64,000 bases of DNA from Zygnema circumcarinatum SAG 698-1b (taxonomy: Eukaryota > Plantae > Zygnematophyceae): the NCBI GenBank assembly GCA_037447605.1, contig CM074823.1, positions 496,001 through 560,000 on the forward strand. Reading direction: 5' to 3'. The position numbers were made by a program, and so were the translations under genes. Of the stretch, positions 33,137-62,000 are shown piece by piece. The notes under the pieces were generated by a model. That model did no database searches, was not told where the DNA came from, and worked only from the letters and a program-made list of their open reading frames with translations. The first letter of the stretch is position 1; each line of letters starts with the position of its first letter.

Positions 33137-36100
33137 ATGATCTCCATCACGCGGGAGTTTCCGAGAAGCTTCCTCTGTGCAGCCGCTCGAGTGTATGAAG
33201 GGATTGCTATTTCTGCTGAGAGAGGAGGAGAGGGCGAAGAGGGAGAAGAGAAAGCAAAGGGAAGAGAGAGGGGAGAGAGTGGAGAGAGTATAGAGGGAGG
33301 GGAGAAGATAGAGGCGGGAGTAAGTATAGATGAAGGAGCGAGGGGAGAGGGAGGAGAGGGAGGAGAGGGGAGAGGGAGAGGAGAAGCAGGCTGGTCTGTA
33401 GCTGCTGCTATAAGCCGAAGTGGAGCTTCAGAGAACGAACAACGCGCTGACCTTCACGTGGTCCTTGTGTCTCCCTTGGTATGTATATATTACGTATATA
33501 TATATATATATATGTATATATATATTTTTTTGTAATTTCGCTTTCGCTTGAAATCTCGTTAAGTTCTCTAATTCCTTAATTTAAATTGCTGAAAAACTTG
33601 TATATATTTGCTCAGATTTGTCTGATTGACGCTTTTATTTCTGCGTTATCTTTAGCCATCGTTTTCTTTGGGTTCAATGTTATTTTGCATCTGGGAGTTG
33701 AGGCGTACACTTGAAAATTTTCTCTTAACTTCTGAAATACTTCATTTTTTGTGGTTTTCTTAATAATGTTCTGAGTTTATTCCAGATTCCCGGCAACGTT
33801 GGGTCGATTGCGCGGACATGTGCGGCGACTTCGGTGGGGCTGCACCTTGTGGAGGTGAGTGAGGGAGAGAGAGAGAGAGATAGAGAAAAGTTGGAAGAGG
33901 CAGGAAAGAGGAGGGAGGAGAGCGGAGAGAGGGAGAAGGGTAGTGGGAGAGAATGGGGGAGACGGAAAGAGAGTGTAGTACAGTCAAGGGGAGAGAGTGA
34001 GGGACTTAGGGAGAGAGAAGAGGGAGGAGCGAGGGAGAGGGGAGAGGAAGGGATGGAGGGAGAGAGAAGGAAAGTATGAGGGAGTGGGAAAAGGAGGGAG
34101 AGGGGAAGGGAGGCAAGAGAGAGTGACTGATGGAGGGTGAGGAGAGAGGTGCGAGGGAGTGAGGAAGAGGAAGAGAGAGGGAGAAATGAAGTGTGGGCGA
34201 GAGGGAAAGGGAGGGGGACAGTGAAGGCGGGAATTGGGAGAGAGGAAAATGAGGGAGATGGAAAGGGAGGGTTAGGTAATTCATTCATGGACCTGTGCGA
34301 AAAGGAAATTATAATGGCAATAAAAACTTTTGTCAAATTAGGAGGAGAGGGAGTAAAAAGTTGCTGCTCGTCCAACTGGGAGGGCACTTGCCTCTGGCAA
34401 GAAATCTGGGTTCAATTCCCAGGCAGTTCCATTCGCTGAGCACTCTCTCCCACTCTCTCTCTCACTCTCTCCATCACTTCCCTGTTGATGTCTGCATCAC
34501 TCCTATCCCTGCCTTTTTATCTTAAAAATGTCTGTATTTCCGTCCTGATTTTGCTTTTTTCCCTCCCCTCTCTCACCTCTGCCTCTCCTCTCTCCCTCCT
34601 CTCCCTCTCCCCCTCGCTCTCTCTCCTCTCCCTCCCCCCCTCTCTCTCTCTCCTCTCCCTCCCCCCCCTCTCTCTCCCTCCTCTCCCTCCCCACTCCCTC
34701 TCTCCTCTCCCTCCCCCCCTCTCTCTCTCTCTCCTCTCCCTCCCCCTCTCTCTCTCTCTCTCTCTCTCTCTCTCTCTCTCTCTCTCTCTCTCTCTCTCTC
34801 TCTCTCTCTCTCTCTCTCTCTCTCTCTCTCTCTCTCTCTCTCTCTCTCTCTCTCTCTCTCTCTCTCTCTCTCTTCTCTCTCTCTCTCTCTCTCTCTCTCT
34901 CTCTCTCTCTCTCTCTCTCTCTCTCTCTCTCTCTCTCTCTCTCTCTCTCTCTCTCTCTCTCTCTCTCTCTCTCTCTCTCTCTCTCTCTCTCTCTCTCTCT
35001 CTCTCTCTCTCTCTCTCTCTCTCTCTCTCTCTCTCTCTCTCTTTCTTTCTCTCTCTCTCTTTCTTCTTTCTTTCTTTCTCTTCTTCTTCTTCTCTCTCTC
35101 CCTCTCTTCTCTCTTCTTCTTCTTCCTCTTCTCTCTTCTTCTTCTTTCTCTCTTCCTCTCTCTCTCTCTCTCTCTCTCTCTGTCTCTCTGTCTCTCTTCT
35201 CTCTCTCTCTCTCTCTCTCTTCTCTCTTTCTCTCTCTTCTCTCTCTCTCTCTCTCTCTCTCTCTCTCTCTCTCTCTCTCTCTCTATCTCTTCTCTCTCTC
35301 TCTCTCTCTCTCTCTCTCTCTCTCTCTCTCTCTCTCTCTCTCTCTCTCTCTCTCTCTCTCTCTCTCTTCTCTCTCTCTCTCTCTCTCTCTCTCTCTCTCT
35401 CTCTCTCTCTCTCTCTCTCTCTCTCTCTCTCTCTCTCTCTCTCTCTCTCTCTCTCTCTCTCTCTCTCTCTCTCTCTCTCTCTCTCTCTCTCTCTCTCTCT
35501 CTCTCTCTCTCTCTCTCTCTTCTCTCTCTCTCTCTCTCTCTCTCTCTCTCTCTCTCTCTCTCTCTCTCTCTCTCTCTCTCTCTCTCTCTCTCTCTCTCTC
35601 TCTCTCTCTCTCTCTCTCTTCTCTCTCTCTCTCTCTCTCTTCTCTCTCTCTCTCTCTTTCTTTCTCTCTCTCTCTCTCTCTCTCTCTCTCTCTCTCTCTC
35701 TCTCTCTCTCTCTCTCTCTCTCTCTCTCTCTCTCTCTCTCTCTCTCTCTCTCTCTCTCTCTTCTCTCTCTCTCTCTCTCTCTCTTTCTTTCTCTCTATCT
35801 CTCTCTCTCTCTCTCTCTCTCTCTCTCTCTCTCTCTCTCTCTCTCTCTCTCTCTCTCTCTCTCTCTCTCTCTCTCTCTCTCTCTCTCTCTCTCTCTCTCT
35901 CTCTCTCCTGCACCTCAGGCTCTTAAAGTGACAGAACTGGAGGGTCCCACACTCAATCTGCACCCTCTCTAATTGTACACGTACATCCCTCCTGGTCCGA
36001 CTTTTTCGCTTACTTTCAGCAGCAGGTTCTCCCTACCTCCCTCCCTCTCTCTCTCCCTCCCTCGCTCCCTCCCTCCCTTTCGACATCCCTCCCTCCCTCC

Positions 36101-62000: not shown

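Follow-up and report, generated by a model that had tools for sequence, protein, structure and literature searches.

In the (AC)m-(GT)n introns of teleosts, complementary simple repeats of tens of nucleotides occupy the two ends of the same intron, the first behind the donor and the second ahead of the acceptor; they are predicted to form a stable bridging helix, and single cases evolve fast and are confined to particular lineages (Lin et al., 2016; PMC4691745). This class was defined by co-enrichment and length pairing of the two repeats, and the contrast between repeats across introns and repeats across exons was taken as support for bridging (PMC4691745). A human (GGG)m-(CCC)n class, with G-rich sequence close to the 5' splice site and C-rich sequence close to the 3' one, is itself only computational. 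Complementary repeats that flank an exon can also loop it out, as in inverted-repeat-driven back-splicing. Ordinary polypyrimidine tracts are 10-40 nt long, and avoidance of spurious AG is known to shape them in Drosophila and other eukaryotes (PMC10946897). Here we analyzed a stretch of 64,000 nucleotides from Zygnema circumcarinatum SAG 698-1b (GenBank assembly GCA_037447605.1, contig CM074823.1, positions 496,001 to 560,000; the window, hereafter), whose introns are filled with GA-rich and CT-rich tracts in a polarised order. Our literature search found no description of GA/CT-polarised introns in algae; one report describes repeats at gene borders, not intron polarity (PMC11686069).

The claim examined here is that exons are located where the sense strand switches from pyrimidine to purine and never where it switches from purine to pyrimidine. 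We defined a tract as a 60-nt segment with at least 85% purine or pyrimidine, and overlapping segments were merged into blocks. The 32 introns of the window consist of 10 with both tract types, 3 with purine tracts only, 11 with pyrimidine tracts only and 8 with neither, and the purine tract precedes the pyrimidine tract in all of the 10 two-tract introns. Three of these are not clean, one lying in a 100% duplicated stretch at a gap and two spanning gaps with missing exons, and the clean purine-first introns number six or seven (binomial p ~0.008-0.016), six of them containing no gap. The FHA intron 31007-29385 is purine-first only loosely, with a 53-nt T-rich stretch within its purine tract. 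Three partial introns at gaps show the same purine-first order. The earlier note on this DNA had claimed that every intron with both tract types reads GA first and CT second, and this was borne out; its coordinates were reproduced for TrmL intron 2, CHP intron 4, IQD intron 1 and the IQD acceptor 48572, AHP introns 1 and 4 and the protease intron (Table 1). Its remark that many introns carry a single tract type also holds, for 14 of the 24 tract-bearing introns. On the other hand, the occurrence of the rule on both gene strands, which it had pointed out, carries no extra weight, because a purine block followed by a pyrimidine block is its own reverse complement and a rule on one strand holds automatically on the other.

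The same polarity is seen at single splice sites, when the 100 nt after each donor or before each acceptor are taken as flanks. Mean purine content is 57% in donor flanks and 29% in acceptor flanks, and the donor value exceeds the acceptor value in 24 of 32 introns (Wilcoxon p=0.0003). None of the 32 acceptor flanks reaches 80% purine, and 14 of them contain 20% or less, but five donor flanks are pyrimidine-rich. Thus, purine-first is a strong tendency at single sites and is exceptionless only among the two-tract introns.

The tracts are anchored at the splice sites. In 12 of the 13 introns with a purine tract, this tract begins no more than 63 nt behind the donor, and in 9 of the 13 no more than 10 nt behind it, running straight on from GTGAG- or GTAGG-type donors. 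Of the 21 introns with a pyrimidine tract, 14 or 15 have its end 20 nt or less from the acceptor. Where a CT tract reaches the acceptor, the acceptor AG is the first AG after the tract, and the AG-free zones before acceptors with long CT tracts extend over 519, 577, 737, 917 and 1476 nt. The asymmetry of ordinary splice signals, namely a pyrimidine excess with no AG between tract and acceptor, is therefore present in these introns. Each CT-to-GA switch that was resolved falls at an exon, a gene start or end, a promoter, a gap where an exon is missing, or, in DNA that seems to be non-genic, a foldback-type repeat. Acceptors 16020 and 27015 have no pyrimidine tract: a GA tract comes to within 37 nt of the former, and TTTAGGG repeats run up to the AG of the latter.

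Tracts cover 26,340 of the 64,000 bases (about 41% of the window) in 56 merged blocks, mostly alternating between purine and pyrimidine along the plus strand. There are 353 purine and 264 pyrimidine runs of at least 16 nt, the G+C content is 51%, and the window has eleven N gaps. We placed 39 exons in seven genes on the basis of conserved peptides or homology, open frames and AG/GT splice signals, and every internal boundary is AG/GT. Pfam and homology searches were run exon by exon, not on joined spliced models. They matched DHquinase_I (E=4e-8), SDH_C (5e-8), FHA (2e-14), SpoU_methylase (1e-4), EF-hand (1e-5 and 9e-7), IQ (1e-3) and DUF4005 (3e-8), and Hpt weakly. The IQD exons are further backed by tblastn with IQD proteins of Closterium, Spirogloea and moss, the closest relatives being those of Closterium species with 90% identity over the conserved WLERW region. 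ARAGORN detected no tRNA in the window, and the Rfam scan of the window gave no match at gathering scores; positions 46087-46124 of IQD intron 1 lie outside the duplex arms, the Rfam scans and the profile and homology queries.

To explain this order, we lean slightly beyond an even chance toward GA/CT repeats that are oriented by the splicing signals without any need to pair, through repeat growth at these signals and selection against the CT-then-GA order. Slippage and unequal exchange would be seeded by the polypyrimidine tract on the acceptor side and by the purine-rich sequence that follows GTRAG on the donor side. A CT-then-GA order inside an intron would be selected against, since AG-rich, enhancer-like GA sequence behind a CT tract mimics an acceptor plus an exon start, and exons would be the sole CT-to-GA switches tolerated in transcripts. 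Such splice-signal constraints alone would yield the purine-first order, and the capacity to form long GA:CU duplexes would be a by-product of the anchored growth. Introns of 0.9-4.5 kb with a single tract exist and are presumably spliced. At the orthologous locus of Closterium, which serves as an outgroup, introns are 73-118 nt long and only 6.6% of bases lie in tracts, so that the intron bloat is specific to the present lineage. The earlier note had mentioned independent expansion at the two splice signals as an alternative, and it is this alternative that fits better, in view of the anchoring, the single-tract introns and the arm-swap result given below.

Several points weigh against this explanation. 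Some CT tracts stop 120-570 nt short of the acceptor and 5 of 32 donor flanks contain 20% purine or less, so that neither anchoring nor decoy avoidance is strict or absolute. The selection against the CT-then-GA order is an inference, and the gene models come from homology and signals alone, with 32 introns in a single window. Moreover, purine donor flanks (at least 80% purine) are combined with pyrimidine acceptor flanks (at most 20% purine) across introns in 7 cases, above the 4.4 expected under independence (odds ratio 5, p=0.06), and the combination of pyrimidine upstream and purine downstream across exons occurs in none of the 25 resolved internal exons versus 2.4 expected (p=0.05), which is the direction that bridging predicts.

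The bridging duplex was the earlier note's own proposal: the GA arm after the donor would pair with the CU arm before the acceptor, join the splice sites of kb-long introns and aid or replace acceptor recognition. Besides the two combinations above, the two acceptors without any pyrimidine tract speak for it, and in folding models the tracts can indeed pair. Arms of 120 nt are predicted at about -150 to -190 kcal/mol versus -54 kcal/mol for random sequence, and CHP intron 4 (967 nt) folds with a minimum free energy (MFE) of -590 kcal/mol. In this fold, 321 bases of the purine arm pair with the pyrimidine arm, and 8 graph steps separate the two splice sites. However, the same intron with its arms swapped gave -594 kcal/mol, the same as the native one; pairing cannot explain the order, because swapped arms fold equally well. 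The complementarity is also generic. Compared with the native -590 kcal/mol, whole-intron shuffles gave about -335, within-arm shuffles about -506 and a foreign CT arm -489 kcal/mol, by which the excess over whole-intron shuffles is, as modelled, mostly arm composition, and about 85% of the stability is compositional. Arm pairs from the same intron are predicted to be no more stable than pairs from different introns (-161 versus -152 kcal/mol at 120 nt, p=0.20; -78.7 versus -75.3 at 60 nt, p=0.28), and ungapped inverted matches between intronic arms have 70-76% identity in about 200 registers.

Length covariation of the two tracts, which the earlier note had suggested as a check, was not seen: arm lengths within introns are unmatched (rho -0.44, p=0.20; ratios ~0.04 to 8), and the G content of one arm does not follow the C content of the other. 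Co-occurrence, whose absence beyond independence that note had named as refuting, lies above expectation but not significantly so (p=0.06), and among introns of at least 450 nt the odds ratio is ~3.7 with p ~0.2 by a hand estimate; it weakens without the short introns because the tract-free introns are short. The single-tract introns, including those of 0.9, 0.9 and 4.5 kb, have no partner to pair with and are predicted to be nearly without structure (-0.02 to -0.10 kcal/mol per nt). The deficit across exons is biased, as the exons hidden in gaps 13887-13986 and 47850-47859 and a 20-nt micro-exon have CT upstream and GA downstream; we do not trust a deficit from which exons at gaps are under-counted, and set it aside. 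Furthermore, a GA arm is transcribed before its own CU arm, when the CU arm of the previous intron is already there, and GGGA-type arms could form G-quadruplexes instead. Bridging is feasible but was supported by none of the tests made here, and it seems to us unlikely. We think it quite unlikely that GA:CU duplexes of hundreds of base pairs form in pre-mRNA and pair the splice sites in a subset of kb-long introns, the absence of CT-exon-GA then reflecting selection against cross-exon pairing.

Causes that do not involve splicing were also considered. Strand-biased mutation, R-loops or triplexes (H-DNA) of mirror repeats, or a repair bias might orient the tracts along transcription units, and it is in line with this that the start codons of DHQ-SDH and AHP have purine tracts shortly before them, that such tracts are present upstream of CHP and TrmL too, and that the intronic telomere-type arrays are strand-oriented as well. 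We nevertheless find such an origin improbable: transcription-coupled bias should give one sign per intron or gene, whereas the skew here flips within two-tract introns and flips back at exons, and the tract ends match the splice sites to a few nucleotides. The order could also be an artefact of poorly assembled low-complexity sequence, or of circular annotation in which exons were sought at CT-to-GA switches. The 100% tandem duplicate (2027-3190 / 3201-4364) and the 100% palindrome (8500-9171 / 9182-9853), both at gaps, the frame shifts in the last TrmL exon, the eleven N gaps and the 20-nt micro-exon placed on splice signals alone give some ground for suspicion, but most exons are backed by Pfam or homolog alignments independent of tract positions, the six clean two-tract introns are gap-free, and misassembly would alter the lengths of tracts, not their order relative to conserved exons; the chance of an artefact is very small in our estimation. 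Finally, the purine-then-pyrimidine pairs might be inserted foldback or inverted-repeat elements, because the window does contain a family of repeats (8583-9770, 10386-10552 and 53532-54495) whose terminal heads measure 165 bp and whose inner arms are GA/CT-rich. This is hardly credible for the introns, where the arms match at only 70-76% in many registers and with unequal lengths, and where the protease intron is without any inverted repeat. We rejected a foldback origin, as the two-tract introns contain neither specific reverse-complement arms nor the terminal heads.

The earlier note had taken the CT-to-GA switches at gaps 47850-47859 and 13887-13986 as marks of missing exons, and the protein alignments agree with it, the IQ67 core and the remainder of the dehydroquinase being absent. 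By tblastn, residues 7-33 of the Closterium protein P0003 align to 47295-47372 (within exon 47166-47372) and residues 85-112 to 48571-48654, while residues 34-84, the 51-residue IQ67 core, have no tblastn match anywhere in the window. This core is a separate 159-nt exon in Closterium, and thus an IQ67 exon of about 159 nt is missing at or near gap 47850-47859. The two sides of this gap are not continuous, because the unmatched IQ67-core residues lie between the aligned flanks; its flanks are of low complexity and not joinable by sequence. Before gap 13887-13986, only positions 1-63 of the 230-position DHquinase_I profile are matched, and the exon after it resembles shikimate dehydrogenase by eye, with no Pfam match; several exons are missing there. 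Gap 53698-53707 is not intronic: it interrupts a foldback-type repeat located between IQD and AHP, which seems to lack one of its inner arms at this point when set beside the copy at 8583-9770.

Table 1. Introns and intron-like intervals with GA-rich or CT-rich tracts in the window (tract order is given in the sense direction of each gene)
Feature	Coordinates	Strand	Tract content
TrmL-like intron 2	33855..35918	+	Positions 1-426 of the intron purine, followed by mixed sequence with a SINE-like (short interspersed element) piece and by a CT tract from 586 to acceptor
TrmL introns 3 and 4	36026-36876 and 36931-37849	+	Pyrimidine tracts only, from the donor itself
CHP (EF-hand) intron 4	39556..40522	-	395-nt GA tract from donor, ~40-nt spacer, 560-nt CT tract
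CHP introns 1 and 2	40980..42357	-	Pyrimidine tracts only, by the purine/pyrimidine criterion
IQD intron 1	46019..47165	+	AGGG/GA-type purine tract at positions 3-970; TCCC-type tract ending 2 nt before acceptor
IQD interval (not one intron)	47373..48572	+	Mixed sequence, CT tract, gap 47850-47859, G/purine tract, CT tract to acceptor 48572
IQD intron	49457..50459	+	Pyrimidine tracts only, up to acceptor
AHP (Hpt) intron 1	56104..57492	+	108-nt purine tract from donor, then ~900 nt of CT tracts to acceptor
AHP intron 2	57624..57999	+	Pyrimidine tract only, beginning 1 nt past the GTGAGT donor and stopping 2 nt short of the acceptor
AHP intron 4	58410..61491	+	2.6-kb purine array (21-nt unit, ~96 copies), then 293-nt CT tract
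Shikimate dehydrogenase intron	15126..16020	+	Purine tract only, from donor to 37 nt before acceptor; no pairing partner
FHA/coiled-coil intron	21716..26178	-	4.2-kb pyrimidine array (39-nt unit) from 4 nt after donor; no purine tract
Protease intron	1156..1609	-	272-nt purine tract, then 94-nt pyrimidine tract to acceptor

Support for the exons differs among the introns of Table 1. In the TrmL-like gene, exon 33786-33854 upstream of intron 2 matches SpoU_methylase, and the acceptor exon is partly supported, without a single open frame. The CT tract of this intron includes a (CT)n run of ~1.3 kb and has the AG-free zone of 1476 nt, and between its GA and CT tracts the sequence at 34340-34440 has a tRNA-like B-box and may be a SINE fragment, with no match by ARAGORN or Rfam. 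TrmL intron 4 is predicted to be nearly unstructured (-15 kcal/mol over 919 nt). The last exon of this gene, 37850-38113, fits a methyltransferase C-terminus only across three frames, with two frame shifts that reflect either assembly indels or a decaying gene. In CHP, the CT tract of intron 4 stops 16 nt before the acceptor and the flanking exon matches EF-hand families, and intron 2 begins with a (TTTAGGG)n array in G-strand orientation, followed by the CT tract.

In the IQD gene, exon 2 matches IQ, and exon 50460-51491 passes through purine-rich coding sequence with a DUF4005 match at residues 241-297 of its open reading frame; at 50600-50700 it reads in frame through a purine tract between the WLERW motif and DUF4005. 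Beyond the gap, several GGTGAGT-like decoy donors are found in the G-rich tract 47860-48230. In AHP intron 4 the CT tract ends 6 nt before the acceptor, and the flanking exons are Hpt by eye, while exon 3 has a weak Hpt match (E=0.033). The shikimate dehydrogenase intron has a predicted MFE of -85 kcal/mol over 895 nt. The exons around the FHA/coiled-coil intron of Table 1 were placed by open frames and splice signals only. This gene ends with a 661-codon open frame rich in E, G and R (19729-21715, minus strand), which is putative coding sequence; its coding status is unproven because purine tracts hold no stop codons.

Other repeats of the window were noted as well. Sense purine tracts abut or enter the start codons of DHQ-SDH (12746-12922), AHP (55803-56009), CHP (42620-42770, minus strand) and TrmL (33190-33375), and they resemble GA-rich promoter or 5' untranslated region elements. 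Telomere-type arrays are located in introns at 41470-41589 and 27020-27334 on the minus strand and at 17100-17960 and 16205-16445 on the plus strand. Among them, (TTTAGGG)n in G-strand orientation directly follows two donors, a (CCCTAAA)n-type array of ~900 nt fills one shikimate dehydrogenase intron, and a (GGGTTGT)n array follows another donor. The tandem duplicate 2027-3190 / 3201-4364 consists of 1164 bp with 100% identity around the 10-N gap 3191-3200 and is most likely an assembly artefact; it holds the putative 20-nt micro-exon (2341-2360 and 3515-3534), placed by splice signals alone. The palindrome 8500-9171 / 9182-9853, of 672 bp with 100% identity, is centred on gap 9172-9181, and its perfect symmetry may be an assembly artefact. 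It belongs to the foldback-like family with inverted heads of ~165 bp and GA/CT-rich inner arms, of which related pieces are found at 10019-10547, 53532-53697 and 54409-54495.

If only anchored growth is at work, these introns would be an extreme and easily measured case of splicing signals orienting microsatellites and constraining intron bloat. The order also offers a gene-finding rule for this genome, namely that exons are to be sought at CT-to-GA switches and that an exon is likely to be missing where a gap coincides with one. If bridging were true, these introns would parallel the teleost (AC)m-(GT)n introns in the plant lineage, with the pyrimidine tract itself serving as building material. 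Should the duplexes form and have an effect, this would be the first structure-assisted intron class outside vertebrates, and how long nuclear double-stranded RNA escapes Dicer-like enzymes would become a question.

With regard to the known systems, the layout is that of the teleost class: complementary simple repeats stand at opposite intron ends, 10 introns having both tracts and 7 combining a donor flank of at least 80% purine with an acceptor flank of 20% or less. A stable helix that bridges the intron is again predicted, and the cases are likewise lineage-specific and fast-evolving. In contrast to teleosts, the repeats here are of GA/GGGA and CT/TCCC type and extend over hundreds to thousands of nucleotides, and the co-enrichment and length pairing that define the teleost class stand at p=0.06 and rho -0.44. 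Moreover, with a pyrimidine tract as the 3' arm, there is no obvious bypass of U2AF-type recognition. The human (GGG)m-(CCC)n class has the same direction; by its definition of at least three GGG in the first 40 nt and at least three CCC in the last 40 nt, the G part is found in 10 introns, the C part in 8, and both in 3 of 32 versus 2.5 expected. Given the generic GA:CU complementarity, an exon preceded by a CT tract and followed by a GA tract could, as with back-splicing repeats, be spanned by their pairing, but no such exon is among the 25 resolved internal ones, while the exons hidden at gaps would be such cases. The likeness to a polypyrimidine tract with an AG-exclusion zone (PMC10946897) includes the pyrimidine excess, the lack of AG upstream of the acceptor and an asymmetry tied to splice sites and not to transcription in general. 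Unlike that ordinary tract, the tracts here reach 4.2 kb and have a mirror image in the purine tract on the donor side, which has expanded to the same extent. The novelty of this locus may thus be a splice-signal-linked strand asymmetry at an extreme, with structure-assisted splicing as a testable possibility.

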